Part shown: positions 10,201-44,529 of the stretch, piece after piece
Layout: each line of letters starts with the position of its first letter
Position numbering within the stretch: the first letter of the stretch is position 1
Assembly: GCA_038087875.1 (NCBI GenBank)
Contig: CM075985.1
Coordinates: 40,486,001-40,550,000, forward strand
Length of the DNA stretch: 64,000 bases
Source: Malacoraja senta
Lineage: Eukaryota
Direction: 5' to 3'
Program-made: the position numbers and the translations under genes
Notes under the pieces: model-generated
The model's input: only the letters and a program-made list of their open reading frames with translations
Database searches by the model: none
Told to the model about the DNA's origin: nothing

Positions 10201-12799
10201 GAGAGTGTCAGAAATCAATACGGAACTGACTCCGAACATTACTCCGAACATGACTATGTGCCTGAATCCCATGCTTTAATGCATGATGTGCGAGAATCAC
10301 ATAAGGAAGAGCTGCCTGCTCTTGCCTCTAAATTTACTGTTCTCTCGGGGATGGACAAGCCACTACAAGAGGAGTTGGCCAGCGGCATCAGCTATCTAAT
10401 AGAAATGACAAGCATGACAGACAGGGTCTGCAAATGGAACCTCGCTGAAGCTCCAACAAGCAAATCGACCCGGGGTCAGAGACTCTGGTAAGTAAGCGCT
10501 CGTTATTAACCTCCGTAAACTCCGAAATTGAGCAGTCTGTCGGCCCAGGTTTGGGTTTACTGGCAGCATGGGCTGTCTAGTGGGTTTTCACTGTCTCTGG
10601 GATAGATCAGGTTGATGTACAGACATTGGCAGGGTGCCTTGCATAGTAACCTCTGTAAGTTCCAAGTAGGTACAGTTTGGTTACCCTGGTTCAGGGCAGA
10701 CCATCATGGAACTGGCTGGCCATATGGGTCATATTGACCAGGGAAGCATTGCCTCATCATCTGTAATTGAGGTTATCAGACTGCTCAGTAGAATCAAGTA
10801 GTTGAAGTCTTCCTCAACACATGGTTTAATATCCCCTCAGTTAGTAGAGTTGCCGGTTCATTGGAGTGGTGGAGATGCCATCTTCTCTGGGATAGGTAAT
10901 TACCACCAGGAAGCTGGTCTGGCATATAATATAATTTTTATCTGACCTACAGGTTCATGTTGTGAATCAACAATGTATTTATAACAATCCATAGGCTCTC
11001 AATACCAGTATTCCTGATTGAGCGGCGGGTCGAAGAGATTGTGTTGTGCACTCTGGCGATTCAGACAAGTGGTTTCAGTCAAAGGACTGCGAGGAAATTC
11101 CTGATTCAGGCTTGCATTATACTATTTCTACTCTGAGGAAAAACGCTGAGTATTTGTGGTGACTCTTAGTCAAGAGTTGACAGAGAACTCGTATTCCCAC
11201 ATTAAAGGGAGATTATGGTTTCCGCTCTAGTCATAAGGTTCTGATTATATGTTATCAGCGAAATGTATGAATAACTAGATAATGCACCTTCCGCGGCAAG
11301 AGAAGCCAAAAATGTTCCGTCCGTATGGTCAATAGAGGAACAGGGGTTCCGAATGCAATCAGTGACAGCTCATCCGAGGATGAGTGGTCTGGCCAAGGAC
11401 TGGAGGGGGATATTTCTGATACTTCTCAAGATTACAGAAACATGGTGCAAGCCGAATCAAGTAAGCATTTGGCTAATCTGATCATGTGTTTTCTTACCCA
11501 GTTTAATATGGATGATTGGCTTTCAGCAATTTAACTGATTCAGAGAATCGATCTTGAAGTTGCATACTCTGCCATATCTATACACATGAGACACAGATGC
11601 TGGTGTTTTATGATAACAAAACCAGTGGTGGAAGCCAATGCTGCCGTACTCAGATTAAAGGGCATTGTGTCATCGAGTTTTAGGTAATATGCAAAAATTT
11701 GCAGCTGATTAAACTTATGGGTTATCAGTAGATATCTTTTGCGATATTAAAAATGAGGCAACATGAAATTTAATAGTGCCAATTTTGCCTATTTTCACGC
11801 CATGGTAAGGTGGCTGAAGCAACTCGTATTTACTCAGTCACAATTGATGGCTGGGGCAGCCTGTCTTCTCGGGCAGCTAGCTCTGCACGAGTGTATGAGA
11901 AGCTTGTGAACAACAGTTGTGAGTTACTTTAAAACGGAAGTAACAGAGGTTGTGTGTGGCTTTCAGTTTGAGCCTAGAGATAGCACAATTGACATTGCTT
12001 GTGCTGCTTTGTCATTCTCTATAGTACCACAAGTGGGACAATAAATGATTGGTTATTCGCCCGCTGTTCACTAACGTTATGCAGGGTGTCATTTATTTGA
12101 CCACTCTAATAGCCTACACTCATTGTAGTGTGCGATGTATATCAATAAATTATTATGCAAATATTCGTCTACTATATTCCTAATGGGAGCAGTATTTTTA
12201 AGATGATTTTGCTTTCAACAACTGATCTCAGCACAAAGAACACTGTCTTTACTCAATCTCTGGCTTGGTCTCTAGGTCATAATTAACATTAGGGTAGCTT
12301 GTTATGGGAATGATCTCATAAGCAAAATTGGCAGGATTGCGTACATTTGAAGTTGACAGCATACCCACCAGAGCAGAGATCGGGGTGTCATTAGGTATAA
12401 GCGTGCACTGAGTTTGCTTGTACCTATGAGATGAAAGATAGTTTCTTTTTTTGTTATTCAATAGTCTCAAGATATTGCTGATGGCTCATTAGCAGCCAAT
12501 AGAATGGATATGTTCCCTTTCATCTTACAGCAAGAGGCTTACATAGTGTGTGTTAATACATTTAAAAAATTGGTTGAATATGTCTGTATATCTGTAGATA
12601 GAATTCTGCACAGTGTTGCATGAGTTATTGTCTAACACAACAGTCTATTGGGACTATGGTCCGGTTAAGAATAATGGCCATCATGCAAGTTAGCATCATG
12701 GTATTACTAACCCATGTTTTTCTACCATTAATGTTTTTCTGTTTAAGTGTTTCACACACAGATTGGGTTACTGCATGAAACCACAGAGCTTTGATGTCT

Positions 12800-12906
12800 T
12801 CACGTAGTCACTCACGTGACTTTGAAATAAAATAGAAAGATTAAACGAGAACTTACCGTTTGAAGGTTGATCTTTATTTGATGAGAAGTTGAAGTGAGGG
12901 AATACG
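12800..12906 (+). repeat. DIRS internal complementary region (ICR)
   Basis: 12800-12832 is complementary to the element's left end (8292-8325). 12833-12906 is complementary to the right-end extension (~13055-13122). Confidence 0.85.
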
Positions 12907-13794
12907 TGTGCCCTCCACTCCCAACCCTACTTCTCATTAAGGCCATTCGGTAGTTTAAGCTCGTTAATCTTTCTATAGCTTAGGTCAGCAACTATTCTGT
13001 GGTTTCGTACAGCTGCTCTAAAGATTGACGCGCATGTGGACTGGGGGGTTCTTTACGTATTCCCTCACTTCAACATCTCATAAAATAAAGATCAAACTTC
13101 AAACCGTAAGTTCTCGTTTAATTATATTTTTCTACAATTACCGCTGCAAGTATCTGGGCCAATTTTCTGAAGTCGATTGAATCAGAAGCAAGCTTGCTCC
13201 AACGCCAGTTTAGATGGTCCATCCTAATCCCTTAATTGAGCTCAGTTCAATTGGCCTCAACCTCCGCTGTTGAAAAGAAAGCAACCCATGTGAATTTGGT
13301 TGTTGATTCTACGATCTAAAGCATTAACTGTCTTTCTTTCATTATTATTTTTCCGCTAAGGCTGGCTGATCTAGAAAAAAATCCCAATTTTTATCTTTTC
13401 ATGTCATATTCAGAGATGAATGAATGAATGATATTTTAGTGTCAGAATCATATATTATAATCAATATCATAAACACAGGCACAAGGGAGATGACCTACCA
13501 CCATGGAATCACGCCTGGATTCAAGATTTATCTTTGATCATAGAAAACGCCTTCCTGTTCTATCAAATATATTTATCTGCTGTCTTGATCTTCCTCCTGC
13601 CTTCTTTTTATTACTCCACTCTGCCCAGGCAAATTTGGCTGAGAAAATCTGGTGAAAATGACTCATGACATTAAACATTTAAAAATATACACATTTATCT
13701 TTGGGCAAATATTCAACAGGAATCTTCACCTTAAGAAACATAATGTCACATTTCAAACTAACCAGTGGTTCAAGTGTAAGAACAATATCTGTAG

Positions 13795-14140
13795 AGAGCG
13801 ACCATAATACATAGGAGCAGAATTAGGCTATTTGCCTCATCGAGTCTGCTCTTCCATTCAATCGTGGCTGATCTAATTCTCCTTCTTTACTCACCTGCCT
13901 TCTCCCCGTAACTTTTACAGCCATTACTAATCAAGAACCTATCAATCTCCGCTTTAAAAATGTCCAATGACTTGGCCTCCACTACTGTCTGTGGCAATAA
14001 CATCCACAGACTCACCACCCACAGAAGAAATTCTTCCTCATCTTCATTCTAAAAGAATGTCCTTTTATTCTGAGGCTGTGCCCTGTGGTCCTAGACTCTC
14101 CCACTACTGGAAACCCTACTCTCGAAATCCACTCAATCTA
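13795..14140 (-). mobile_element. Decayed CR1 3' fragment
   Basis: Reverse-complement CR1 3' UTR and C-terminal sequence (ccattcaatcgtggctgatc...ccttctccccgtaac). Confidence 0.65.
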
Positions 14141-14202
14141 TGCCTTTATAGAGAATAGAGTTCGTCTTTCAGTTTAAATCATATCATTTCAGTTCTGGGA
14201 AA

Positions 14203-14725
14203 AGAGGTCCGAAAGCCGTTGGAGAGGTCGCTGAGGGAGGAGCTACAACCGAGCGGTAGGACTTAAAAAGGAGCGCGGGGGCTTGTTCCTTACAGAGGTC
14301 CGAAAGCCGTTGGAGAGGTCGCTGAGGGAGGAGCTACAACCGAGCGGTAGGACTTAAAAAGGAGCGCGGGGGCTTGTTCCTAACAGAGGTCCGAAAGCCG
14401 TTGGAGAGGTCGCTGAGGGAGGAGCTACAACCGAGCGGTAGGACTTAAAAAGGAGCGCGGGGGCTTGTTCCTAACAGAGGTCCGAAAGCCGTTGGAGAGG
14501 TCGCTGAGGGAGGAGCTACAACCGAGCGGTAGGACTTAAAAAGGAGCGCGGGGCTTGCTTCTTACAGAGGTCCGAAAGCCGTTGGAGAGGTCGCTGAGGG
14601 AGGAGCTACAACCGAGCGGTAGGACTTAAAAAGGAGCGCGGGGCTTGCTTCTTACAGAGGTCCGAAAGCCGTTGGAGAGGTCGCTGAGGGAGGAGCTACA
14701 ACCGAGCGGTAGGACTTAAAAAGGA
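14203..14725 (+). repeat. 90/91-bp monomer array (~5.8 copies) in the CR1 5' UTR
   Basis: agaggtccgaaagccgttgg... units start at 14203, 14294, 14385, 14476, 14566 and 14656. Units are nearly identical and have no spacers. Confidence 0.95.
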
Positions 14726-26199: not shown

Positions 26200-26431
26200 A
26201 AACACCAATATAATCCCTGCCATAAAACCCGATTCTTAAACTGTATTCACTGGTAAATAATGTCAAGAACAAGTGGTCTCATTCCCATTGGATCTGGTTA
26301 TCGGGTTTGTGTACATATGGACCAATAATTAGCTTCGCAGCAGAGTTCTGTTAAACAAAAGTTCAAGAGATTATGTTACTGTTGCTGTATTTACTCTGCT
26401 GGTTAAATAGCGCGGTGGGCAGCTGTAAAAC
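26200..26431 (+). promoter_or_regulatory. Candidate proximal promoter of the MHC class I-like locus
   Basis: Unique sequence with CCAAT at 26205-26209, ATTGG (Y-box orientation) at 26287-26291, CCAAT at 26322-26326 and TTAAAT at 26403-26408, directly upstream of the leader exon. Short motifs only. Confidence 0.3.
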
Positions 26432-26483
26432 ATGCGTCTTTTTACCTTACTGAACACTTACGGTGTTGCCACCGTCTCCTCAG
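26432..26483 (+). pseudogene. MHC I-like exon 1 (leader), MRLFTLLNTYGVATVSS
   Basis: 52-bp ATG-initiated exon with a consensus donor CAG|GTAAGC. Its phase-1 G joins alpha1 to give D-L-H-H-L. Confidence 0.6.
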
Positions 26484-26781
26484 GTAAGCAATGCTGCTTC
26501 TACTTGTGAACTTTGAGGAAACAACAAAACGGATTCTATTTCTGTTGCGCAGTCCCTGTGTTTGTCCTGGATTCATTGTCTTGGATGTATTAATTTAATG
26601 ACTGAATTGAATGTATTAATAATTTTGGGTAACGGTGATTTTTGTGTTCTGAAGGCTCCTGTGAGAAGTTATATATACTATGGTTACCTTGGCAATCCAT
26701 TGAAGAGAAGAAATGAATACAGGTAAATAATGAACATAGAGCATATGACAATACAGCACAGGAGCAGGTTCTTCAGTCCTT

Positions 26782-26815
26782 CAGTCTGAAGAAGGATCTC
26801 GACCCGAAACGTCGC
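26782..26815 (+). ncRNA. Minimal hammerhead ribozyme-like core in a Penelope-derived repeat (representative copy)
   Basis: CUGAAGA-A-GGAUCUCGACCC-GAAA-CGUC. The window consensus has stem II GGGU/ACCC. Stem I is weak and activity is unproven. Confidence 0.4.
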
Positions 26816-29034
26816 CTAATATATGTGCCGAACAAAATAAACTAATCTCCTCTACCTGTATGTGATCTGTATCCGGCAATTCCATGCCTATGTATGTACC
26901 TATCTAAAAACCTCTGATATGTAACTGTCGCATCTGCCACCACCACCACCACCACCACTGGCAGTCCATTACAGGTGTCGACCACCCTCCACCTAAAACA
27001 ACTTTCCCCGCTCATCTCCTTTGAACATTGCTTCTCCTACCTTAAAGTGAAGTTCTCTGGTCTTCGACATTTCCACCCTGGTAAATAGGTTCTGGCTGCC
27101 CACTCTGCTATGCCTCTCACCGTGTTATGCACTTTCATCAGTTCTCCCTTCAACCTCCAGTATACAAGCGAAAACAATCTATGTTTGTCCAATCTGTCCT
27201 TGCACTAATACCTCAGATAGAATTCAGGTAAATCGGTGATGTACACTTTCAATAAAGAAGAGACTTCTGCATTAGTAGATGTCCCACCTCTCCAAGATTT
27301 CCTCAGCTGGTGTTAGACACCCTCATGATGGTACAATTCAGCCTCCATTAAATGACCAATCAATGTTCATTTAATATTGTTGTTGTCTTGATTTGTTTGT
27401 TGCATCCTTCCGCTCCTGCCGACCCTATCCATTTCCCCACCACCACTTCCTCAGAAGACGATAATGACATTTAAGACGTTTGAGGATAGGGACGTGGATA
27501 TGCAGGGAATTGAGGGGTATGAATCATGTACAAGCATGAAGTGTTTTGTTTAATTTGACATCATGATCGGCACAGACATTGCGGCTGAACTCCAGCCCAT
27601 TGCACCCTTAATGAACAAATATCTATCAATCTGAATCTGGAAATTTTCAAGTGGGCAAGATGTTCAACAGATTACAGAATCGAGAATCAGAGGGCATAGG
27701 TTTAAATTGAGGGGGTAAAAATGTAATGGGAATCTGATGGGCAATTTCTTCCCACACAATGCTTCCTTTCTACTATTATGACAATCGTCAAGGCTTGGAG
27801 ATTACAAACCTGTAATCGGATGCTCGTCCTGAAAGTTTAATCCCATTGTTATCAGATGAAGTAAACATAATGGTGATTCCCCAGTTGAAATAATAACATA
27901 TAAAATAATAATCCTTGGCTGTGGAGTGTTTTGGGAAGTCACATGGATTTTATCATTACTGTATTCCACTCTTAGCCGTCTTATATTTCTCCTCGTAACA
28001 CTGAAACAGACACTTCTAACTCTGCCCTCGGGGCCCCTTCTCACTTCACTTAAACACATGAACTTGGACACTGTCTGGTGTGCTGCATGTAATCTTTATT
28101 ACAGAACAAATATTGCTTGTTCATGTGGAAACAAGAAACTGCACATGCTGGTTAATAGGCATAAAATGCTGGAGTAATTCAGCAGATCAGGCCATATGTC
28201 TGGAGATCATGGATAGGTGATTGTTTCAGTTGAGACAACAAGTGCAGGAAGGAAATGCAGATGTGTATGAAGGAACTGCAGAAGCTGATTTAAACCGAAG
28301 TAAGACAATGAAGCTGGAGTAACTCAGCGGCACAGGCAGCATCCCTAGAGAGAAGGAATGGGTGACGTTTCGGGTCGAGACCTTTCTTCTGACTGCTGAT
28401 GCAGATGCTGGTTTACACCGAAGATAGATACAAAAGGCTGGAGTAACTCAGCAAGTCAGGCAGCATCGCTGGAGAAAAGGAATAGGTGGAGTTTCAGGTC
28501 AAGACACTGCATCAGACAGAGTCGGGGGTGCATATATTTAATTGTACTTTTCCATATCTCTCGGTTCCCTGTCCCCTGACTCTCAGTCTGAATAAGGGTC
28601 TCCGGGAGATGCTGCCTGACCCACTGAGTTACTCCAGTATTTTGTGTCGAGTTTCAGTTTAGGCCCTGTTTATTACCGTCTCCTCCCCCCATCTCTATGA
28701 GCTGTGTTACAGCTCATAGAGATGCTGCGTATGAGGACCTGGACTCAATCCTGACCTCTTACAACCCGGCGTTTTTTTTTAATTTTTCCCCTGCAAACAT
28801 GTGTGTTTCCTATGGTTATTCCAGTTTTCCCCCACGTCCCAAAAATGCCGGGCTGAAAGGTAAGTTGGCCAGTGTGAATTGATCATGCATATGTATTAGA
28901 ATTGGTGGAGGGGTTGAGGGAGGTGTTAATGGCATAGTGGAAAATATTAAATGGGTCAGCGTACCACAAGTATGAATAGGTGTTTGATGGTTACCACGAA
29001 CTTGGTGGGCTAAAAGGCTTTTTATGTGCCGTAC

Positions 29035-29410
29035 CCAGAGGACATAAGTTTAAGATGAAGGGGGAATGATTTAATAGGAACCTGAGGCGTAGCTTTGTTA
29101 CACAAAGGGTGGTGGATGTACTGAATGAACTGCCGGAGAAGGTATTTCAGGCAGGTACTATCGCAACATTTAAGAAACATTTAAACAGGTACATGGATAG
29201 GATAGGCTTATAAGGATGTGGGCCTCAGTCAGCTGTAGAGCCCACGTCAATGGATATTTCTCAGGTGGAGATTAACTGATTATTGATCAGTACGGGTTTA
29301 AAGGGTTATGGGGTGCAGGCAGGAGAATGTGGTTGAGAGGGAGAGATAGAGCAGCCATGATTGATTGGCCGATGGGCTGAATGGCCTAATAATTCTCCTA
29401 GAACTTATGT
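29035..29410 (+). mobile_element. Decayed CR1 3' fragment
   Basis: agaggacataagtttaag...gtggtggatgtactgaatgaactgccgg CR1 C-terminal/UTR similarity. Confidence 0.7.
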
Positions 29411-29720
29411 ACTGATGAAGTACTTGCACTGTAGATGGGGCATGTTGGTCGGCGTGGCAAGTTGAGCCGTAGGCCCAGATTCCCATAGACTCTTTGACTT
29501 TACCTCTCTATGATTCTAGAAAGTCTCCTTGACATTGTCCATTTTCTTAATATAATAAAATATTCTTCAAATGTTGGAATATTGTAACTAGTAGAACCTA
29601 TCGACACGATGGACAATAATAGATCTTTGAAGATGGGAAGCAATCCAATCGGATCATTCAATACCTCGACCACAATTGGTGGAGTCGGTATCAGAGCCGA
29701 TCTTGCCAACTCTTGAAGAA

Positions 29721-30042
29721 GGCTCAGTGGTACAGCGGTAGACTTGCTCCCTTATCTCGATTACAGCACCATAGACCCAGGTTGGATCCTGACTACGGGT
29801 GCTGTCTGTACGGAGTTTGTCCATTCACCCCATGACCGTGTGGGTTTTTCCCGAGATCTTCGGATTCTTCCCACTTTCCAAAGACGTACAGGTTTGTAGG
29901 TTAATTGTCTTGGCGTATAATGTAAATTGTCCCCAGTGTGTGTAGGATGGGGTTATTGTGTGGGGGGTTGCTGGTCAGTGTGGACTCAGTGGGCCGAAGG
30001 GCCTGTTTCCATGGTGTATCTCTAAGCTAAAACTAAACTAAA
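29721..30042 (+). mobile_element. HE1/V-SINE-like SINE
   Basis: ggctcagtggtacagcggtag head, ggttggatcct B-box-like motif, central domain, (ctaaa)n tail. Confidence 0.8.
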
Positions 30043-30192
30043 GACTCCTGACCCAAATTGCCACCTGATCATTGATGCTGCCTGCCCCACTGAGTTCCTC
30101 CAGCACTTGCATCTACAGGTCCTTTTGACTCCATTATACAAAGTTGTTGTATTGTTATCAGTTTCAGCATTAATAACTTTGAGTTAATTACA

Positions 30193-30836
30193 GTGATAGC
30201 ATTCATAGCAAAAGGATTTGAGTATAGGAGCAGGGGGGTTCTACTGCAGTTGTATAGGGTCTTGGTGAGACCACATCTAGAGTATTGCGTACAGTTTTGG
30301 TCCCCAAATCTGAGGAAAGACATTCTTGCCATAGAGAGAGTACAGAGAAGGTGTACCAGACAGATTCCTGGGATGTCAGGACTTTCATATGAAGAAAGAC
30401 TGGATAGACTCGGCTTGTGCTCGCTAGAATTGAGAAGATTGAAAGTATAGAAACTTACAGAATTCTTAAGGGATTGTACAGGCTAGATGCAGGAAGATTG
30501 TTCCCGATGTTGGGGAAGTACAGAACAAAGGGTCACAGTTTTAGAATAAGGGGAAAATCTTTTAGGACCGAGATGAGAAAAACATATTTCACACAGAGAG
30601 TGGTGAATCTCTGGAATTCTCTGGCACAGAAGGTAGTTGAGGCCAGTTCATTGGCTATATTTAAGAGGGAGTTAGATGTGGCCCTTGTGGCTAAAGGGAT
30701 CAGGGGGTATGGAGAGTAGGCAAGTACAGGATACTGAGTTGGATGATCAGCCATGATCATATTGAATGGCGGTACAGGCTCGAAGGGCCGAATTGCCTAC
30801 TCCTGCACCTATTTTCTATGTTTCTATATTTCTATG
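30193..30836 (+). mobile_element. CR1 3' fragment (lineage A) in MHC I-like intron 1
   Basis: AFIAKGFEYRSR...RPHLEYCVQFWSP to the (tttctatg)n tail. Confidence 0.92.
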
Positions 30837-30871
30837 ATACAATCATACTTATTTTTGTTTATGCATTGCAG

Positions 30872-31132
30872 ATTTACACCATCTTGCATTTAACTACCTG
30901 TTGAACCATGGGTTGAGTGAGCTGCCTGAGTACAGTATGGTAACAATGCTGGATGATCTCCAGATAGTATATTTTGACAGCACACTAGAGCGGGCTGTTC
31001 CCAGACAGCGATGGATGGCCCAGTCTTTCCGGCAGGATCACTGGGATTCAATGGCCATCACAGTTGCAGGTTTTCATGGGATTGTCAGAGGAAATGCTGA
31101 GATAGTTTACCAACAGCAACATGGTATCTCGA
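30872..31132 (+). pseudogene. MHC I-like exon 2 (alpha1), reading frame intact; donor at 31124 or 31133
   Basis: Acceptor tgcattgcag ends at 30871. DLHHLAFNY...LPEYSMVTMLDDLQIVYFDS...AVPRQRWM...HWD matches the class I alpha1 pattern. Confidence 0.85.
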
Positions 31133-31224
31133 GTAATTATCCTGACCGGACCTGGGGTAGATACCCAGTGATGGCACAGATGGATTTTGTTTTCGTTTTC
31201 TTGCTGTCACATGTGCTGGAGTAC

Positions 31225-31860
31225 TCTGATAAACTTGTTTTGCATGTTAGTCAATCACATCAAAGAATACTATTCATAAATACAATCAAACCAAACTCAA
31301 GTACAATAGGTAGAGCCAAAGGGAGGACACAGTGTGCAGAATGTAGTTCTCAGCATTGTAATGCACCAGTGCCAGAGACATAGTCCAGCGTCAACAATGG
31401 CGTTGAGGTGAACCCTAGCATAAGGGAGGACTGTTCAGAAAACTGATAACATAGGGGTGGAAACAGTTACTGAGTCTGGTGGTGCACGCTTGCAAGCTGA
31501 CGTACCTTCTGCTGGATGGAAGCAGGAAGAAGAAGGAGTGACCAGAGCGGGACGAATCTGATTATGTTGTCTGCTTTCCTGAGTCAGTTGAAATACAGAT
31601 GGAGTCAATGGTGGGGAATCATGTTTGTGTGGTCGACTGCGCTACATCTCCACCTCTCTGCAATTTCCAGCGGTCTTGGGCAGAACTATTTCCAAACTAA
31701 GTTGTGATACAACCTGTCAGTATGTTTCTATGGTACATTTGTAGAAGTTTGTAAGAGTCATTGGAGATGCCGCATTTCCTTAGTCTCCTGAGGCTGTAGG
31801 GGATCCAGAGGCTCTCAACCGTTTTCACTTCAGCACCATTGATGCTGTTTCGGACATTTA
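31225..31860 (-). mobile_element. Rex1/Babar-like LINE 3' fragment
   Basis: Reverse strand has YKLLQMYHRNILTGCITT-like and downstream Rex1 C-terminal similarity. Confidence 0.65.
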
Positions 31861-31980
31861 GTCCATCATATTTTGACAGAGACACGGCCCATCTTCTGTA
31901 TTAAATGTGTCCTAATTGCTGAACACCCATTGATAAAAGTTAGTTGGTGATAGTATATTTATGGGCTAAGCATTTGATAT

Positions 31981-32224
31981 TCAACACCAGTAATAAGTGG
32001 ATGGATTGGATCATCTGTTTTATTGGGCTGGAATGAGGGAGAAACCATTAGTATATTTATAGCCTAATAACCTAGAGATGGGACCTTGATTTAAGCTGGT
32101 TGATTGTGACGATGTAATTATTCCCTCAGTAATAATATTCTGCTAATCCTGCATTCCCTCAATTTTGGCAACAATCCTCAGAGGGTGTAGCAATCCCAGA
32201 CAGTGCAACAGCCTTGATGTACTT
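31981..32224 (+). repeat. 244-bp direct repeat, left copy (flanks the L1 insertion)
   Basis: Matches 35177-35419 apart from one substitution and a 1-bp indel. Confidence 0.95.
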
Positions 32225-35176
32225 ATCTCCAATAATTAAATATTTTTTATTATTGGAGATAAGTACGAAACCTATTTATATCATTACAGTCTAACATTTT
32301 TAAATTGATAATATTGTCAATTATTATTACATTGTCTCCAATACCTTTTGCCCTTTTTTAAAACTAGATAGAACTAAAGAGATAGATGAAGTAAAGAAAG
32401 AAAAGAAAGAGAAGAAGTTTAAAAAAAAAATAAAAAAAACAAAGAAAAAAAAAAAAAAAGGAGAAAAATAGTTAAAGAAGAATGGAAAAATGTATTAAAA
32501 TAAAAAACTTCATTCGAGATATATTCGTACATTTCAGAATATAGCATTTCATCCATTCTTTAGCCCGAGTGCTAGTCAGGTTCCTGTGCTGAACTATTCT
32601 GACCCTTTAAGTAATCAATAAAAGGAGACCATGTTCCTACGAATAATTCCTGTTTGTCCAACAGGGAAAATCTGATTCTTTCCACGTTTAAGGTCTCCGT
32701 CATTTCTATAATCCACATTTTGATTGTGGGGGCCGTAGGGCCTTTCCAAAATTTTAGAATTAATTTTTTTCCTGTTATTAAACTATAATCAATAAAGTTT
32801 CTTTGTGTTGTTCTAAATGTTTGATTTAATTCTAATTTTCCGAGTATTATTAATTTTGGATCTGGGTCCAATTGTGTGCCGGTTACTTTAGATATTATAC
32901 TGAAAATATTTACCCAGAATTTTTTAATTTTTATACAGTTTGCAAACATATGAGATAATGTAGCTTCTAAATGTTGACATTTATCACATATAGGTGAGAT
33001 ATGTTGAAAAATGTTATGTAGTTTTGTTTTTGAATAATGTAACCTATGTATTACTTTAAATTGTATTAGAGAATGTCTGGCGTTTAGTGAGCATTGATGT
33101 ATGTGTTGCAAACTTTCTTCCCAAGTATCTTTCGTTATTACTTGATTTAATTCTTTTTCCCATGTTTGTCTGTGTAATTCCGTCGAAGGAATGTCACTGT
33201 CTAATAAGATATTATATATATAAGATATTAATTTTTCTGTATTAGGATGTTTGTTCCAACATTCATCAAGAATTTCTGAATTTCTAATTCGAAAATTTTG
33301 AGAGTTCGATTTTACATAATCTCTAAGTTGAAGATATCTGAAATAATCATTTCCTCGAAGTCCATAAGTCTGTTGCAACTCCTGAAATGTCAGAAAGTGC
33401 CTTCCTTATAAAGTTGTCCCATATTTTTAATTCCATAATTCTTCCATTGTGTAAAACCCCCGTCCAACCATGAAGGCTTAAACAAAGGGTTATTCACAAT
33501 TGGAAGAAAAAGTGATAAATTATCTAATTTTAATGTCTTTTTTAATTGTTTCCAAATTCGTATAGCACTAAATATTATAGGGTTTTCCCTATAATTTTTT
33601 TTGTTTAATTTAGACGTAGCAAATAATATCGAACCGATATCAAAAGGTAAACAATCTTCCTTTTCCATTTTTAACCAGTCTGGTTGATGATCTATTTCTT
33701 CCAACCAGAAATTCATATTTTTAATATTAACAGCCCAGAAATAAAACAAAAAGTTGGGTAAAACCAAGCCTCCATTTATTTTTGATTTACACAAGTGTCT
33801 TTTGTTTATCCTATGATTCTTATAATCCCAGATAAAATCATTAACAATAGAGTCCAGTTTTTTAAAAAAGTTTTTTGTCAGATATATCGGAATTGTCTGA
33901 AAAAGGTATAATATTTGCGGTTAAAAAATCATTTTTATAGCATTAATTTTGCCAACCATTGAGATAGGAAGTGTTTTCCGGTATTGAATATTCTTATGTA
34001 GTTTGTTCAGTAATGGGGGAAAATTTGCTTTAAATAATGATGTATATCTCTTAGTTATATAAATACCTAGATATTTAAATTTTTCATTTACTTTTTTAAA
34101 TGGAAATTGTTGTATTATCTGTTTGTTATGTTCCCTTATTGGCATAATTTCACTTTTATTCCAATTTATTCTGTATCCTGAAAGTGAACCAAATTGGGTT
34201 ATTAGCTTTAATAAGTTTGGAATACTAATTTCTGGTTTTGTAATGTAAATTAATACATCATCTGCGTATAGAGAAATTTTATTCACTGTGTCCTTTGTGT
34301 TATACCCATGTATTTCCGGATGCCCCCTAACTCTTTCTGCCAGTGGCTCAATAGCAAGCGCAAATAATAATGGAGATAACGGGCATCCTTGTCTACAACC
34401 TCTAGATAGGCTAAATTTAGATGACAACCTTTGGTTTGTAAATATTCTACCCGTGGGATTTGTATATAACAGTTTTATCCATGTACAGAATTTCTCCCCT
34501 AGCTGCATATTTTCCATCACCGAAAATAAATAAGACCATTCCACCTGATCAAATGCTTTTTCAGCGTCAAGTGAGATTATTGCTAGATCTTCGTTAATAA
34601 TTCTCTTGGAATATATAATATTAAATAATCTTCTTAGATTATAATATGAATACCGTTTCTGAATAAAGCCTGTTTGGTCAGGGTGTATTAATTTATTCAT
34701 CACTGTACTTAATCTATGCGCTAGTATTTTAGTTAATATTTTCTGATCTGTATTTAAAAGTGCAATTGCTCTGTATGATCCCGGGTCTTCCGGATCTTTA
34801 TCAGCTTTAGGAATAAGTGTTATTATAGATTCATTTAAAGTGTCTGGAAGTTTCTGTTGAGTATAGATATTTTCATACAGTTTTTGTAAACGTGGGCAAA
34901 GTAAATCATAATTATTTTTATAAAATTCGGAGCCTAAACCATCTGGTCCTACTGCTTTACCATTTTTTAAAGAACCAATAGACTCTTCAATATCCTTTAT
35001 CGTAATCTCCCTTTCTAATAATTCTCTATCGTTTGAATGTAAACCTTTTAAATTACATTTTAGTAAAAAATCTGCTATTCCTTCTGATTGTGCTACTGTT
35101 TTAGTTGAATAAAGGTTATAATAGTATTGGAGAAATCTATCATTTATGTCCTTGGGCATTTTTAATAATTCTCCTG
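32225..35176 (-). mobile_element. 5'-truncated L1/Tx1-clade LINE (ORF2 RT + C-terminal CCHC region + 3' UTR)
   Basis: GPDGLGSEFYK, LDAEKAFDQV, CRQGCPLSPLLF, LYADD, YLGI motifs and CDKC...HMFANC. One nonsense codon (~33921) and one frameshift (~33390). Confidence 0.92.
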
Positions 35177-35419
35177 TCAACACCAGTAATAAGTGGATGG
35201 ATTGGATCATCTGTTTTATTGGGCTGGAATGAGGGAGAAACCATTATATATTTATAGCCTGATAACCTAGAGATGGGACCTTGATTTAAGCTGGTTGATT
35301 GTGACGATGTAATTATTCCCTCAGTAATAATATTCTGCTAATCCTGCATTCCCTCAATTTTGGCAACAATCCTCAGAGGGTGTAGCAATCCCAGACAGTG
35401 CAACAGCCTTGATGTACTT
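35177..35419 (+). repeat. 243-bp direct repeat, right copy
   Basis: See 31981-32224. Confidence 0.95.
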
Positions 35420-35664
35420 CCCATCTGCATTGCGTTAACCTTCAGACTGACCTGTTGGTTCTGTAGCATTACCCATCTGACAATGCACTTCTTCCTCTGT
35501 TCTTTATGTATGACAGTGCAGAAGACTGAGTGCTACCCTTCTGACACAGCAGAACTCATTTAGAATTACATCCGCAACAGTAAAGCTCCCCCCCTCAGCC
35601 CTTGAGGTTAGTCCATGCCCTCAGTATATAGACCATGAGTCATAGGGTCATTGAGTCACACATC

Positions 35665-38600
35665 ATGTTTGAGTAATGTTGGTGGAGATGGCCTACCTGG
35701 GGGCAGCGACAGCGGCCGGGCCTCTGGCACAAAGACCGGTCCTGTTGCTCAGAAGGGTAAGGAAAATAAGAGGAGGGCAATTGTAATAGGGGACTCTATA
35801 GTCAGGGGGTCGGATAGGCGTTTCTGTGGACACAGACAGGAGACCCGGATGGTAGTTTGCCTCCCTGGTGCCAGGGTCAGGGATGTGTCTGAACGTGTCG
35901 AAGAAATCCTGAAATGGGAGGGAGAGGAGCCTGAGGTTGTGGTACATATAGGTACCAACGACATAGGTAAAAAAAGAGAAGAGGTCCTGAAAGAAGAATT
36001 TAGGGAGTTAGGTAGAGAGTTAAGGAGAAGGACTGCAAAGGTAACAATCTCAGGATTACTGCCTGTGCCACGCGACAGTGAGAGTAGGAATGGAGCGAGG
36101 TGGAGGATAAATGAGTGGATGAGGGACTGGTGCAGTGGGTATGGATTCAAGTTTCTGGATCATTGGGACCTCTTTTGGGGAAGGTGCGACCTGTACAGAA
36201 AGGATGGGTTGCACTTGAACTCGAGGGGGACCAATATCCTGGCGGGTAGATTTGCAAAGGCTACTGGGGAGACTTTAAACTAGTATGGTTGGGGGGAGGG
36301 ACTCAAATTGGGAAAGCTAGCAGTCAGTGTGTGAGGCAGGAGGCAGAGAATGGAAGCACTCTGACCCAAAATGTAGCGGAGAGAGAAGAAAAAGACAATA
36401 AACAGTGAATAAGAGAGGGTGGGTTTCTTAAATGTGTATATTTTAATGCTAGGGGCATTGTAAGAAAGGTGGATGAACTTAAAGCCTGGATTGACACCTG
36501 GAAGTATGATGTTGTGGCGATCAGTGAAACATGGTTGCAGGAGGGCTGTGATTGGAAACTAAATATTGCAGGATTTCGTTGCTTCAGGTGTGATAGAATT
36601 GGAGGGGCAAGAGGTGGAGGTGTTGCATTGCTTATCAGAGAAGATATTACAGCAGTGCTTTGGCAGGATAGATTAGAGGGCTCTTCTAGGGAGGCTATTT
36701 GGGTGGAACTGAGAAACGGGAAAGGGGTAGCAACACTCATAGGGGTGTATTATAGACCGCCAAATGGGGAGCGAGAATTGGAAGAGCAAATATGTAAGGA
36801 GATTGCAGATATTAGTAGTAAGCACAAGGTAGTGATTGTGGGAGATTTCAATTTTCCACACATAGACTGGGAAACACATTCTGTAAATGGGCTGGATGGG
36901 TTGGAGTTTGTAAAATGTGTGCAGGATAGTTTTTTGCAGCAATACATAGAAGTACCTACTAGAGAAGGGGCGGTGCTGGACCTCCTGTTAGGAACTGAGA
37001 CGTGTCAGGTGGCAGAGGTATGCGTTGGGGAACAGTTCGGGACCAGTGATCACAATACCATTAGTTTCAATATAATTATGGAGAGGGTCAGAACTGGACC
37101 TAGGGTTGAGATTTTTGATTGGAGAAAGGCTAACTTTGAGGAGATGCGAAAGGATTTAAAAGGAGTAAATTGGGACAGTTTGTTTTATGGGAAAGATGTG
37201 GAAGAGAAATGGAGGACATTTAAAGGTGAAATTTTAAGAGTACAGAATCTTTATGTCCCTGTTCGGTTGAAAGGAAATAGTAAAACTTGGAAAGAGCCAT
37301 GGTTTTCAAGGGAAATTGGACACTTAGTTCGGAAAAAGAGAGAGATCTACAATAATTATAGGCAGCATGGAGTAAATGAGGTGCTTGAGGAGTATAAAAA
37401 TGTAAAAAGAGTCTTAAGAAAGAAATTAGAAAAGCTAAAAGAAGATATGAGGTTGCTTTGGCAAATAAGGTGAAAGTAAATCCAAAGGGTTTCTACAGCT
37501 ATATTAATAGCAAAAGGATAACGAGGGATAAAATTGGTCCATTAGAGAGTCAGAGTGGACAGGTATCTGCAGAGCCAAAAGAGATGGGGGAGATATTGAA
37601 CAATTTCTTTTCTTCGGTATTCACCAAGGAGAAGGATATTGAATTATGTGAGGTAAGGGAAACAAGTAGAGTAGCTATGGAAACTATGAGATTCAAAGAA
37701 GAGGAAGTACTGACACTTTTGAGAAATATAAAAGTGGATAAGTCTCCAGGTCCGGACAGGATATTCCCTTGGACATTGAGGGAAGTTAGTGTAGAAATAG
37801 CAGGGGCTATGACAGAAATATTTCAAATGTCATTGGAAACGGCAATAGTGCCGGAGGATTGGCGTACTGCGCATGTTGTTCCATTGTTTAAAAAGGGGTC
37901 TAAGAGTAAACCTAGCAATTATAGACCTGTTAGTTTGACGTCAGTGGTGGGCAAATTAATGGAAAGGATACTTAGAGATAATATATATAAGCATCTGGAT
38001 AAACAGGGGCTGATTAGGAACAGTCAACATGGATTTGTGCCTGGAAGGTCATGTTTGACTAAACTTCTTGAATTTTTTGAAGAGGTTACTCGGGAAATTG
38101 ATGAGGGTAAAGCCGTGGATGTTGTATATATGGACTTCAGTAAGGCCTTTGACAAGGTTCCTCACGGAATGTTGGTTCAGAAGGTTCAATGGTTGGGTAT
38201 TAATGGTGGAGTAGCAAGATGGATTCAACAGTGGCTGAATGGGAGATGCCAGAGAGTAATGGTGGATGGTTGTTTGTCAGGTTGGAGGCCAGTGACTAGT
38301 GGGGTGCCACAGGGATCTGTGTTGGGTCCACTGTTGTTTGTCATGTACATCAATGATCTGGATGATGGTGTGGTAAATTGGATTAGTCAGTATGCAGATG
38401 ATACTAAGATAGGTGGGGCTGTGGATAATGAAGTAGATTTTCAAAGTCTACAGAGAGATTTATGCCGGTTGGTTGAGTGGGCTGAAAGATGGCAGATGGA
38501 GTTTAATGCTGATAAGTGTGAGGTGCTACATCTTGGCAGGACAAATCAAAATAGGACGTACATGGTAAATGGTAGGGAATTGAAGAATGCAGGTGAACAG

Positions 38601-39311
38601 AGGGATCTTGGAATAACTGTGCACAGTTCCCTGAAAGTGGAATCTCATGTAGATAGGGTGGTAAGGAAAGCTTTTGGTGTGCTGGCTTTTATAAATCAGA
38701 GCATTGAGTATAGAAGTTGGGATGTAATGTTAAAAATGTACAAGGCATTGGTGAGGCCAATTCTGGAGTATGGTGTACAATTTTGGTCGCCTAATTATAG
38801 GAAGGATGTCAACAAAATAGAGAGAGTACAGAGGAGATTTACTAGAATGTTGCCTGGGTTTCAACAACTAAGTTACAGAGAAAGGTTGAACAAGTTAGGG
38901 CTTTGGAGCGCAGAAGGTTAAGGGGGGACTTGATAGAGGTCTTTAAAATGATAAGAGGGATAGACAGAGTTGACGTGGATAAGCTTTTCCCATTGAGAGT
39001 AGGGAAGATTCAAACAAGGGGACATGACTTGAGAATTAAGGGACAGAAGTTTAGGGGTAACATGAGGGGGAACTTCTTTACTCAGAGAGTGGTGGCTGTG
39101 TGGAATGAGCTTCCAGTGAAGGTGGTGGAGGCAGGTTCGTTTTTATCATTTAAAAATAAATTGGATAGTTATATGGACGAGAAAGGAATGGAGGGTTATG
39201 GTCTGAGCGCAGGTATATGGGACTAGGGGAGAATACGTGTTCGGCACGGACTAGAAGGGTCGAGATGGCCTGTTTCCGTGCTGTACTTGTTATATGGTTA
39301 TATGGTTATAT
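35665..39311 (+). mobile_element. 5'-truncated CR1 (lineage B): esterase ORF1 3' part + frameshifted ORF2
   Basis: ORF1 GDSIVRG/HIGTND/DGLHLN. ORF2 FLKCVYFNARG...ISETW...YADD in three frames. Distinct (ttatatgg)n tail. Confidence 0.93.
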
Positions 39312-39748
39312 CATAGAAACCGGCCCTTCTGCTCACTGAATCCACACTGATCATCAATTGTGTTAAGATGGAGTCACAGCAAACTGCCAATCTGACTAAA
39401 AAACAAACAGGGGGAACTCAGCAGGTCAGGCAGCATTCTGTGGCAAAATGGGCAGAAAACATATTAGACCAGGAGCATTCAGAGTGATGGAGTAGGGTGG
39501 ATAAAGCAGGAAAAGAAATGTAGTCTATGTAGGATAGTGTTAATATGCGGGCATCACTGGTCGGTGCGGACTCGGTGGGCCGAAGGCCCTGTTTCCGCGC
39601 TGTAGCTCTAAACTAAACCTGCTACAGCTTTATGTTGTGTGCTGTTCTGCCTGTTTGTACCACGCTGAGAACTGATGTGTTAATTGCCTCTCCCCTCCAT
39701 CCCCTCCCCTCCCTCAACCCAAATCCTGCACCCCTACCTCAGCCCCAG

Positions 39749-40024
39749 CTGTTTTCTTTGTCCAGGCTTTCTGCGGCTGTGAAGTGGACAGTGACAATTC
39801 CACTGATGGGTTTGTCAGACTGCGTTATGATGGGGAGGATGCCTGTGCTTTCGACAAGGACAGAATGCGCTAGATTGCATTAAGTCCAGATTTCCGAGCG
39901 CTAGTAGATCGATGGAATGTCAACACCTTCATGAACAAGTATTTCAAAGGTCTCCTGGAGAAGGACTGTGTGAAGTGGCTGCTGATATATCTTGAGTGTG
40001 GACAAGATGCACTACAGACGAGAG
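39749..40024 (+). pseudogene. MHC I-like exon 3 (alpha2), 276 bp, with a premature stop
   Basis: AVFFVQAFCGCE...YDGED..FD...RMR*IA...DRWN...LEKDCVKWL..YL. Pyrimidine-rich acceptor ccccag ends at 39748. The downstream dinucleotide is CT. Confidence 0.9.
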
Positions 40025-40124
40025 CTATACGACCTAGACACTCTGACTGGTGGGGCCAGGGGATATCCCCTAGATAGATCAAATGGGAAATATCATGCAC
40101 GTCAGGCTGTCACTTGAGCAATTA

Positions 40125-40428
40125 TTTAGTTTAGTTTTGAGATAGAGTTCGGAAACAGGCCCTTGGTCCACCCAGACCGCACCGACCAGCGATGCTTGCA
40201 CACTAACACTATCCCACACACAATAGGGACAATTTGCATTTATACCAACCATATTAACCTACAAATTTGTACGTCTTTCGAGTGTGAGAGGTGACCGAAG
40301 ATATCGGATAAAACCCACGCAGGTCACAGGGAGAACGTACAAACTCTGTAAAGACAAGCACCCGTAGTTAGTAACGAACCCAGGTCTCTGGCGCTATAAG
40401 GCAGTAGCTCCAAAGCTTCGCCACCCTG
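40125..40428 (-). mobile_element. HE1/V-SINE-like SINE
   Basis: tttagtttagttttgagatag tail and reverse-complement central domain. Confidence 0.8.
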
Positions 40429-41247
40429 TTCTTGGACGAGGGTATCAGTAAATTGTCTGACAACGTACCTCTTAGATGGAGCCAGTGTGTAGGAAGTGCA
40501 AGTGAAAGATAAATATTGCACCAGTGTCATCTATCACACAGGAACATAGACATTCACGAAATGGAGGGATATGTATCTTTGCCATATGTTTAGCACCAAC
40601 CTTGTCGCCTGAAGAGTCTGTTGCTGTGCTGATCAGAAAGCGAATCGGATTCTCTATTTGCCTCTATTACTCCATAGGATGGTGACATCCAATTTCCAAC
40701 AGTTCTCTGGTTGAAGAACTTCTTCCTCCCATTCCCTCTTGGAATAATTAGTGTTATTATTCAGCAGAGATTCATGAACAAATAGATGCAATCATGTCCA
40801 AAGTATCAATTCCAATGGTGAGTTATACTCCTCCATTGGGCCCTGCATCCCCCTCCCCTCTATGCTGTCAGTTAAAGTCTGGAGCCAAGATAAAGAGCAT
40901 GTCAGTTGTATTACAACTAAATGTTTTGTTGTTTTGCCATAAATGCAAAATGAAAAGAGAAAAGGCTGGAAACATTGTGCAAGACAGAACTGCAGATGAT
41001 GGTTTACACCGAAGGTAGACACAAAATGTTGGAGTAACTCAGTGGGTCAGGTAGCATCTCTGGGCATTCCTTCTCACCAGAGATGCTGCCTCATCTGCTG
41101 CGTTACTCCAGCATTTTGTGTTTGGGCTGGTATCTTTTTTCATCTAGGGAAAAACTCTGATTGGGAAAGAGGTGAGATGGAGTGATCTTGTCATTGAAGG
41201 CTTTTTCTTCGTGTCTTCACTGATTCTGACGCTTCGTACACTTGCAG

Positions 41248-41504
41248 AAAACCCTGAGGTGTTTATTGGTATTAAACGTAATGGGTAGCAATCACTGAGA
41301 CTCTCCTGCCTTGTCACAGGCCTCTACCCACAAGCCATCGATGTAACGTGGCTGAGAGATGGTGAGGGGGACCACGAGTTTGAATCCAGTGATCTGTTAC
41401 CCAATTGGGATGGGACTTACCAGCTGAAGAATACAATTGAACTGAGTAGAGAAGATGTGGCAAAATTCTCCTGTTACATCGAACATGCAACTCTGCTGCA
41501 GGGA
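41248..41504 (+). pseudogene. MHC I-like exon 4 (alpha3, C1-set Ig), with a premature stop and truncated 3' end
   Basis: ENPEVFI...*..LRLSCLVTGLYPQAIDVTWLRDG...LLPNWDGTYQL...FSCYIEHATL. Acceptor cttgcag ends at 41247. Confidence 0.9.
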
Positions 41505-41765
41505 GTCCCACCGAGGGTTGGCCCACCGAGTCCATGTCAACCAGCGATCCCTGCACATTTACATTATCCTACATATTAGGGACAATTTACAATTATACCA
41601 AGCCAATTAACTTACAAACCTGTATGTCTTTGGACTGTGGGAGGAAACCGGAGTTCCAGTAGAATACCCACGCAGGTCCTGGGGAGAAGGTGCAAACTCT
41701 TTACAGACGGGACCCGCAGTCAGAATTGAACCCGGGTCTCTGGCGCTGTAAGGCAGCAGTTCTAC
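41505..41765 (-). mobile_element. HE1/V-SINE-like SINE abutting the truncated alpha3 exon
   Basis: ggcccaccgagtcc...gtgggaggaaaccggag...gaacccgggtctctggcgctg. Confidence 0.75.
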
Positions 41766-41769
41766 CAAG

Positions 41770-42720
41770 TGGGCAAAGCAGAGGCAAATGGAATACATTG
41801 TAGCAAATGTCTGATTATGCATTTTGGTAGAGGGAATAAAGATGTAGTCTATTTTCTAAATGGGGAGATAATTCAGAAAACTAAGGGACTTGGGAGTACA
41901 AGTGCAAGATTCCCAAATAGTTATTTTGCATATTGAGTCGGTGGTAAGTAAGGCTAATGTAATGCTAGCATTCATTTCGTGGGGACTAGGATATAAAACA
42001 ATAATATAATACTGAGGCTTCATCGGCACTGGTGAGGACACATTTGGAATATTGTGAGCAGTTTTGGGCCCCATATTAGAAAGGATGTGCTGGCTTTGGA
42101 GAGGGTCCAGAGGAAGTGTGTCCTGGGGATGAGTGATTTAACGTATGAGGAGTGTTTGAAGTCTCTGGGCCTGTACTCGTGGGAATTTAGAAGGATGAGG
42201 GGGGTATCTCATTGAAACCTACAAGATAATGAAAGGCCTAGTTAGTGGATGTGGAAAGGATGTTTTCAGTAATTGGAGAGTCTAGCAAAGCCTCACAATA
42301 AAAAATGTACCTTCAAAATGGAGATGAGGAATTTCTTAAATCACAGGGTGGTGAATCTGTGGAATTTATTGAAACAGACAGCTGGGTGGTCCGATTCATT
42401 GCATATCTAAAAGCAGAGAATGATAGGTTCTTGGGGTGGAAGATTGCAACCTTCACGTTGTCCACCCTGTTTCGACTAATGTAATCAACCCGATGTGCAC
42501 AACCAAATACATCAAATATAACAAGTTGACCTGCAGCTTTAGGCTGTGCACGCCATACGCAAGAAGAAGAAGAATAGGTTCTTGATTAGTATGGGTGCCA
42601 AACGTTACAGGGAGAAGGCACGAGAATGGGATTCAGAGGTAAAAATAGATCTGCCATGACTGAATGGTGGAGTGGACTCGATGGACTGAAAGGCCTACTT
42701 CCGCTCCAATGTCTTACGGT
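41770..42720 (+). mobile_element. Decayed CR1 3' fragment
   Basis: CR1 RT-thumb/C-terminal similarity with many lesions. Confidence 0.7.
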
Positions 42721-42997
42721 CAAAATTATTCTTATGTCACCCTTAACTCACCCATCCGAATGTAGGAACGGTGGAAGCAAGATAGGCTGATCCTGGCCAA
42801 GGTATCTTATCTTCTTTCTTCGGCATCTAGCTAATTTTATGATAGTAGTTAGTTGCACAAAAGGCCAATAGTGGTGCCATATTTGACCCCATTATCAGTC
42901 TGAAGTAGCAGCATCTGTTCTCTAGCTGACTTATTTGTTGCAGACAAGACCTCTGCAAAGATCTTCACACCAGGGCCAAGCTGACATGGTTAAAATT

Positions 42998-43183
42998 NNN
43001 NNNNNNNNNNNNNNNNNNNNNNNNNNNNNNNNNNNNNNNNNNNNNNNNNNNNNNNNNNNNNNNNNNNNNNNNNNNNNNNNNNNNNNNNNNNNNNNNNNNN
43101 NNNNNNNNNNNNNNNNNNNNNNNNNNNNNNNNNNNNNNNNNNNNNNNNNNNNNNNNNNNNNNNNNNNNNNNNNNNNNNNNNNN
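42998..43183. other. Assembly gap (186 N)
   Basis: Run of N. Confidence 1.
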
Positions 43184-43602
43184 GAAAATTAAGCTGTCAG
43201 ATATCATTGAAATATCTGCAAAGTTTAAAACCTTTGAAGTTTTATCAACTATGAATGGGTTCACTTTTATTTGCTATAATAACAATCGTCAACATAAGAA
43301 AATGGCCTTGTTGATCTCTACACTGCAAATAGTAATCTATTTCTGATGTACTTGAATCTTTAAATTCTTAATTAAATGCTGCAGATAAAATCACAAAATC
43401 TCAATGCTAATATTAACTTTAAAGATTTTTCATCGATTTTTTTAAACACATCCATCCTCTGGACAATTACATAAATCTAAGACTTAATTACTTTGTAATT
43501 AGATGTGAACAGTGCCAGTTTAATGTAGATAATAAAATCATTACAAAGTTGTTATTGATCAATGAATGTTTAAAATACACTGTATATACTGTATGCTTAC
43601 AG

Positions 43603-43725
43603 AGAGGGCAGTGAAAGAAGATATAAAGATTAGGATCGTGACTGGAGCTGTAATCGATCCTCTCGTTCTCATGGGGATCATGTTTGCAATTGGTTGCTGG
43701 AAGAAGAGGAAAAGGAGAAAAACTC
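43603..43725 (+). pseudogene. MHC I-like connecting peptide/transmembrane exon
   Basis: Acceptor tgcttacag ends at 43602. ERAVKEDIKIR-IVTGAVIDPLVLMGIMFAIGCW-KKRKRRK. Candidate donor GTAATG at 43726, or read-through to ~43805. Confidence 0.6.
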
Positions 43726-43804
43726 GTAATGAACAGGGACCAGCTGACAACAACAGAGACCAGGAGAGGACTGCAGTGACCATGAAGCACAATAAGCTTG
43801 CTAC

Positions 43805-44262
43805 CGGAATGATGCCTGGATTAGTGGGGTATTAGCCACAGGGAGAAGTTGGAAAGACTTGGATTGTTTTCTCTGGTATGTCGGGGCTTGAGTGGAGACC
43901 TGACAGTAATATATAAAACTGTGAGGGGTAGAGATAAGGTAGACCATCAGACTTTTTACCCATAAAGGAAATAGCAAATAAGAGGAGGTATAGCTTTACA
44001 ATGAATGGCAAAGTTAATAATATGTGCAGGGCAAGTGTTTTACGCCAAGCGTGGCGAGTGACTGGAATGTGCTGCCAGGGGTGGTGGTGGAAGCAGATAC
44101 GATAGTTGCATTAAAGAGACTTTTAGATAGGCGCATGCATATGCAGGGAATGGATGGATATGGATTATGTGTAAGCAGATAACAATTGGTCATGGCATCA
44201 TGTTCAGCACAAACATTGTGGATCAAACGGGCTGTTCTTGTGCTGTACTGTTCTATGTTCCA
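43805..44262 (+). mobile_element. Decayed CR1 3' fragment
   Basis: gaatgatgcctggattag...agacttggattgttttctctgg to a ctgttctatgttccatg tail. Confidence 0.75.
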
Positions 44263-44529
44263 TGCTCTTTATTCTATCAATGCTGACTGATGGCTTTACA
44301 TTCTGCCATACTTGATTTAATTGCTGTCTTAGCTGCAGTTACCATGTGATTCCTAACTCTTTTATTGCACCACATTTTGGAATAAAAGGTAGCCCATTTG
44401 ATTGATTGATTGATTGATTGATTGATACTTTATTACCACATGTGACATGTCACAGTGAAATTCTTTGTTTTGCATAACATACACAAGGTATACAAAGAGT
44501 CACCATGTATAGGGTGCTGACACAGTTAT

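Follow-up and report, generated by a model that had tools for sequence, protein, structure and literature searches.

A damaged MHC class I-like locus in the skate Malacoraja senta, in all likelihood a non-functional copy of a non-classical heavy-chain gene

A stretch of 64,000 nucleotides (nt) from the skate Malacoraja senta (GenBank assembly GCA_038087875.1, contig CM075985.1, positions 40,486,001 to 40,550,000 of the forward strand; the whole stretch is called the window here) contains a series of short coding segments that resemble the exons of a heavy chain of class I of the major histocompatibility complex (MHC), and stop codons interrupt two of them. This raises the question of whether the segments belong to one class I gene, whether that gene could still produce a protein, and whether it is the only copy of its kind in this skate. 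As judged by comparison of sequences, the window very probably holds a non-functional copy of a skate non-classical class I heavy-chain gene, which is probably an old segmental duplicate.

Exon structure and class I identity

The + strand of the window was translated from stop to stop, and the DNA around each candidate exon was inspected. Five + strand exons can be joined in frame, and the joined sequence encodes a class I heavy chain that two TAG codons interrupt (Table 1); the exon lengths of 52, 252, 276, 282 and 233 nt give 1095 nt, which is 364 codons and a stop. An exhaustive HMMER search with the alpha1 exon found one close protein, XP_055486430.1 from the little skate Leucoraja erinacea (P0001; named 'MHC class I-related gene protein-like, partial'), which is encoded at a locus, L001, on contig JAMYXN010000384.1 and served as the intact reference. 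The first-pass annotation had proposed five phase-1 exons in the order leader, alpha1, alpha2, alpha3 and transmembrane (TM) segment, and this was borne out, apart from the 3′ end of the last exon. All four acceptors are AG and in phase 1, and exons 1 and 2 have GT donors, also in phase 1. The layout is thus one exon per domain in phase 1, with the donors of exons 3 and 4 destroyed in the window and canonical in L001.

The leader matches those of shark orthologues of the sixgill type and from sawshark (P0153 and P0155; MLLVTLLNVYCVP.VSS), and its ATG and GTAAGC donor are kept at L001 100-151 with 5 synonymous differences and 1 non-synonymous difference. In a motif scan, ATTGG (Y-box orientation) was found at 26287 and CCAAT at 26322, 110-145 bp upstream of the leader ATG, and TAAATA at about 26405; the three motifs may be a promoter remnant. 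At the other end of the gene, exon 5 had been thought to end at 43725. This is not a conserved splice site, since the GTAATG at 43726 of the window corresponds to ATCACAAT in L001; the exon instead runs on to the stop at 43833-43835. Its acceptor is conserved, and its frame is open through the QGPADN.RDQERTAVTMKHN tail, which is conserved in L001, to a stop in both copies, although a 20-nt indel near the 3′ end alters the final residues compared to those of L001.

The encoded domains are those of class I. The Pfam family MHC_I (PF00129) scored 27.9 bits on the alpha1 piece, 26.4 bits on alpha2a and 15.2 bits on alpha2b, and since the pieces are short each of them alone falls below the cut-off of 28.3 bits; the intact P0001 carries PF00129, and an alpha1-alpha2 MHC_I superdomain is recognised on this evidence. 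In addition, alpha3 matched C1-set (PF07654) with 51.4 bits (E 1.5e-13; cut-off 21). Searches of the PDB with the window exons returned class I-type chains only. The best match of alpha1 was 9ch4_A (E 1.7e-22), and 9ch4 was also the best match of alpha2b and alpha3. The first-pass annotation had left it to such searches whether the joined translation would match MHC_I and C1-set or would have its best matches in unrelated gene families, and it was the former that was found.

Diagnostic residues are also in place. The alpha2 exon contains VQAFCGC (with Q96 and G100-C101), YDG, and C164 in KDCVKW, and in the alignment the stretches FCGCEV and KDCVKW match the Cys pair that carp U and 9ch4-type sequences have there, which is the alpha2 disulfide C101-C164. 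The Cys pair of alpha3 lies in LSCLV and FSCYIEH. Hence every feature that had been listed as canonical for a class I heavy chain (the exon layout, the GC...C disulfide of alpha2, Q96, YDG and a C1-set alpha3) is present. A second class I gene was not found in the window.

The assembly gap in intron 4 touches no coding sequence, and it begins about 1.47 kb after alpha3 and ends 419 bp before the TM acceptor. Since a single little skate locus is collinear with both of its flanks (the left one up to 42301 and the right one from 43279), the exons on either side of the N run belong together, as judged from the flanks and not through the run itself. Between 41530 and 43600, and downstream of the last exon, comparison with the orthologue proteins gave no class I-like coding signal beyond chance matches. 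We therefore rejected the idea of a further, hidden exon within intron 4 or downstream, the best chance match being sequence derived from the reverse transcriptase of a long interspersed nuclear element (LINE).

Table 1. Features of the class I-like locus in the window (positions count from the first nucleotide of the window)
Feature	Position	Strand	Remarks
Exon 1, leader peptide MRLFTLLNTYGVATVSS + 1 base	26432-26483	+	ATG to donor, exon-final G followed by GTAAGC
Exon 2, alpha1 domain, intact	30872-31123	+	acceptor AG; donor, exon-final G followed by GT; 93% identical to P0001
L1-like LINE in intron 2	~31981-35419	-	flanked by a duplicated ~244-bp target
CR1-like LINE in intron 2	~35651-39308	+	GDSL open reading frame 1 (ORF1), endonuclease, reverse transcriptase
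Exon 3, alpha2 domain, 276 nt (canonical length)	39749-40024	+	in-frame TAG 39871-39873; CT at 40025-40026
Exon 4, alpha3 C1-set domain	41248-41529	+	in-frame TAG 41286-41288; end set by cryptic GT at 41530
Assembly gap (N run)	42998-43183		inside intron 4 (alpha3 to TM)
Exon 5, connecting peptide, transmembrane helix and cytoplasmic tail in a single exon	43603-43835	+	TAG 43833-43835

Lesions relative to the intact little skate copy

Positions 26331-44482 of the window (about 18 kb) are collinear with L001 at 86-90% nucleotide identity, with the upstream region, the introns and the downstream flank included. The exons of the two copies are 93-96% identical compared to 86-90% for the introns, and the window is 89% identical to P0001 over alpha1-alpha3. 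In the base-level alignment, alpha1 is intact, and its splice sites and all four acceptors are the same in both. The two copies belong to one gene lineage, and their exons come in the same order, with matching splice sites and intron positions. They differ in that L001 is intact, with TGG, TCG, a GT donor and a full alpha3 end, whereas the window has four lesions.

Two of these lesions are the stops in alpha2 and alpha3 that the first-pass annotation had reported, both of which were confirmed. In alpha2, a TGG codon, which is kept in L001 and in a second little skate copy, L003, has become TAG, and the Trp that it encodes is invariant across the orthologues; in alpha3, TCG of L001 has become TAG. 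The alpha2 donor is changed as well, from GT in L001 to CT in the window. The fourth lesion is a deletion of about 0.5 kb, so that L001 19259-19775 has no counterpart in the window; this segment contains the last 13 nt of the alpha3 exon, its GTAAGT donor and one copy of a repeat. Homology of the window alpha3 to L001 ends at 41507 and is followed by 13 nt of filler (41508-41520), and from about 41518-41521 onwards the sequence is derived from a repeat. The in-frame join at exon 4 thus relies on a cryptic GT within repeat-derived sequence, while the original alpha3 exon end (..NVPQ) is kept in L003, whose annotated protein is P0164, and in every orthologue. Wherever a lesion could be scored in L003 and the orthologues, these have the ancestral state, and the lesions are therefore derived in the window copy.

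With two TAG codons, a CT donor and the end of alpha3 deleted together with its donor, the locus has neither an open frame nor a full set of usable splice sites, which supports the earlier call of a class I pseudogene and makes it more damaged than had been supposed (four lesions instead of two). The ancestral gene would have had a leader, alpha1, alpha2, a C1-set alpha3 and a TM/tail segment, one exon per domain and all in phase 1. In the window copy, translation would end after 142 residues at the TAG of alpha2. Beyond that point the altered alpha2 donor, the second TAG in alpha3 and the loss of the 3′ end and donor of alpha3 through the deletion would leave no class I protein to be made.

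Lesions of this kind could also arise as assembly or sequencing errors in a live gene, or could mark one haplotype of a polymorphic locus. Assembly gaps are close by, null alleles are frequent at MHC class Ib loci, and the exons are better conserved than the introns, all of which would fit. However, the four lesions are independent and of different kinds (two TAG substitutions, a splice-site substitution and a 0.5-kb deletion with filler), and they are accompanied by radical replacements at invariant sites, a clustering that errors would not produce. A live gene or a null allele is thus highly improbable.

A truncated product is a further alternative. Exons 1 and 2 (leader and alpha1) are undamaged, as are their splice sites, the leader differs from that of L001 mainly by synonymous changes, and the ATTGG and CCAAT boxes lie upstream of the ATG, so the locus might still yield a regulatory or antisense RNA, or a secreted fragment of alpha1 that stops at the first TAG. 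With half of alpha2 missing, a product of 142 residues would be unable to adopt the class I fold, and its mRNA would be a target of nonsense-mediated decay. Moreover, the conservation of alpha1 is accounted for by the age of the copy alone (synonymous divergence, dS, 0.06). Any remaining use of this sort is hardly credible.

The comparison also bears on how such loci are annotated. The first-pass annotation had warned that automated pipelines could miss or split a locus like this one, and that is what has happened in the little skate: the NCBI model XP_055486430.1 lacks the leader exon, which sits 10 kb upstream, and the dead copy L003 is annotated as a scrambled protein of 263 amino acids. 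The public model further includes 12 residues read from an intron (GTRPRHSDWWNG; L001 12990-13030). An ATATCC that resembles a U12-type 5′ splice site lies 39 nt past the end of alpha2 and is conserved in the window (40063-40068), in L001 and in L003, and the NCBI model appears to use it as the alpha2 donor. A U12-type intron after alpha2 was rejected: the use of ATATCC in the window would be 2 nt out of frame, L001 has a canonical GT donor where alpha2 usually ends, and in all orthologues the junction is the canonical one, with LQRR before it and xTPEV after it. The present locus fixes the exon structure of its lineage (the leader lies far upstream, the donor of alpha2 is canonical, and TM and tail share one exon) and corrects the public little skate model, and it serves as a warning to annotators that such loci get split or mis-spliced.

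An old duplicate or the only copy

Since the little skate has an intact gene collinear with the window, the window copy could be either its true orthologue or a duplicate. The non-coding divergence between the window and L001 is 10-14%. As a yardstick, introns of the neighbouring class I gene, which is of the type of PDB entry 9ch4, were compared between Amblyraja radiata and L. erinacea and are 95-97% identical (divergence 3-5%). The window and L001 thus differ about three times as much in non-coding sequence as do Amblyraja and Leucoraja orthologues, and for this reason the window is probably an old dead duplicate.

Under the competing explanation, the window would be the only copy in this species and truly orthologous to the gene of the little skate, so that this skate would have lost an otherwise conserved and mostly single-copy gene. 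The collinearity with L001, which extends through the entire gene and its flanks on either side, is what would be expected, and among the homologues there is no protein of this lineage from A. radiata, although its genome is annotated. The site patterns are also compatible with orthology, being star-like: the window agrees with L001 at 127 sites and with L003 at 105, while L001 agrees with L003 at 103, so that the three copies are about equidistant. What speaks for a duplicate is that the A. radiata block carrying P0136, a skate orthologue of 9ch4, is orthologous to the contig of L001 and the 9ch4-type gene L002 at 95-97% and the window is not, and that extra dead copies are already present in L. 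erinacea. One of these, L003 (P0164; contig JAMYXN010000412.1, gene at 10001-14232), is partial and has lesions of its own, namely an alpha2 acceptor changed from AG to CG, TGT changed to TGA at Cys164 and a donor changed from GT to GC; an alpha1 exon was not found in it. Taken together with the divergence, these observations make the loss of an only copy unlikely.

We also compared the coding changes. Between the window and L001 there are 46 non-synonymous and 24 synonymous differences, which gives a dN/dS (ratio of non-synonymous to synonymous divergence) of 0.51. When polarised with four outgroups, 14 replacements at conserved sites are derived in the window and 8 in L001, and the window has changes at invariant sites in alpha1 (Y to N), before YDG (G to R) and in TGFYP (F to L), which suggests relaxed constraint on the window copy. 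Both LINEs in intron 2 are missing from L001 and L003 and were thus gained in the window copy. The Pfam families RVT_1, Exo_endo_phos and Lipase_GDSL_2 were matched within them. The L1-like element is flanked by two copies (31981-32224 and 35177-35419) of a sequence that the little skate locus has only once, which agrees with the earlier proposal of a target-site duplication of about 244 bp around this insertion.

Several points weigh against an old dead duplicate. The excess of 14 over 8 derived substitutions is not significant, and a dN/dS of 0.51 fits a recent death or the normal rate of a class Ib gene alike. In addition, if the skate of the window is a more distant one than Amblyraja and Leucoraja, the copy could be the true orthologue and the only copy, which would mean a loss in the lineage of this skate and not a dead duplicate. 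On balance, we favour an old segmental duplicate: a block that included the downstream 9ch4-type gene was probably duplicated, the copy in the window probably decayed in the course of birth-and-death evolution, and this copy is probably not the only one in the species. A dead class Ib copy is routine on its own, and what gives it value is its context: it is a record of birth-and-death turnover in the class Ib cluster of skates, in a lineage for which the 11 other sharks and rays sampled have one annotated protein each.

Lineage, groove residues and neighbouring genes

To which class I lineage does the gene belong? A search with P0001 found proteins that had been named 'MR1-like' automatically, 54-72% identical, in 12 species. 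The little skate has two of them, the second of which is partial, and the remaining 11 species (Pristis, Mobula, Hypanus, Pristiophorus, Heptranchias, Scyliorhinus torazame, Stegostoma, Hemiscyllium, Mustelus, Cetorhinus and Chiloscyllium) have one each. In a maximum-likelihood tree, the window and P0001 fall inside this 'MR1-like' clade with 100% support in the Shimodaira-Hasegawa-like approximate likelihood-ratio test (SH-aLRT), and branching within the clade tracks the relationships of batoids, squalomorphs and galeomorphs. The split that joins the clade with the 9ch4-type clade has an SH-aLRT of 95. Judged by this tree, the window gene is a member of an old elasmobranch 'MR1-like' orthogroup and a neighbour of the 9ch4 lineage. 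No published name for this orthogroup was found in a limited literature search.

Chain A of 9ch4, an elasmobranch non-classical class I chain, is like the window gene in that it is the best solved-structure match, stands in the neighbouring clade of the tree and represents the neighbouring gene on the chromosome. It differs in lineage, since skates own distinct 9ch4 orthologues: P0136 scores 397 bits against 9ch4, compared to 207 bits for P0001 (E 2.9e-60), and the window falls in a separate clade with 100% support. PDB entry 8gm8 belongs to a third, more distant lineage, which is represented by P0018. UFA is a CD1-like lineage within the class Ib cluster (PMC10751288), and both UFA and UGA, which are linked to the MHC and present in one or few copies, bind lipids in crystal structures, where the UGA of Flajnik and colleagues is named by personal communication only (PMC12562908). 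The 9ch4 chain is probably one of these CD1-like UFA/UGA genes, with UGA as the probable name.

The groove residues were scored at the classical peptide-terminus anchors (Y7, Y59, Y/R84, T143, K146, W147, Y159 and Y171). Aligned to carp U, the window has F7, H59, Q84, L143, R146, W147, L159 and Y171; it thus keeps W147 and Y171 only, together with K146R, and the lineage as a whole keeps 2-3 of the 8. Since most of the anchors have been lost, the window gene is not a classical class Ia gene (UAA-type). Working members of the lineage would most likely display a non-peptide, possibly lipid-like ligand. A point against this is that the ligand is read only from the lost anchors and from hearsay about relatives. 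A lineage with an anchor-less groove beside CD1-like genes is a more interesting object than the dead copy itself, and its intact copies are worth study.

Two named lineages were considered and rejected. UDA is an old, MHC-linked, low-copy and non-polymorphic class Ib lineage of sharks and rays, features that make it similar to the present lineage. However, UDA reportedly keeps eight of the nine invariant peptide-terminus residues, compared to 2-3 of 8 here, and by this residue count the window gene is not UDA. Mammalian MR1 is likewise a non-classical class I molecule with the same domain layout, and it comes second among the PDB sequence matches of P0001. Its Schiff-base residue K43 aligns with Ala in the lineage of the window, so 'MR1-like' is only an automatic label.

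The surroundings of the gene were also inspected. On the little skate contig, the 9ch4-type gene P0139 lies about 42 kb downstream of P0001. In the window, an open frame of 299 codons on the + strand (535-1434) encodes a rhodopsin-type G-protein-coupled receptor (GPCR; Pfam 7tm_1, E 1.4e-22), and it is 70% identical to the 'probable G-protein coupled receptor 139' of L. erinacea (XP_055521888). In the little skate, the 9ch4-type class I gene has copies of the GPR139-like gene on its flanks, and this arrangement suggests a repeated class I plus GPCR block. A block made up of the lineage gene, the 9ch4-type gene and the GPR139-like receptor gene may have been duplicated several times in skates, with copies alive or dead on different blocks or haplotypes, but we put this forward only tentatively and consider it rather doubtful. 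If true, skates would show presence/absence and copy-number variation for a gene of which other sharks and rays have a single copy, and the chromosomal copy here would be a dead one.

The 9ch4-type genes of skates have very long introns, with models that span 55-99 kb (L004 on A. radiata CM021389.1; L002 and L005 in L. erinacea). In L004, the intron between the leader and alpha1 is 32 kb long. L005, which is the longest of the L. erinacea models, is a fusion and continues by read-through into a GPR139-like gene.

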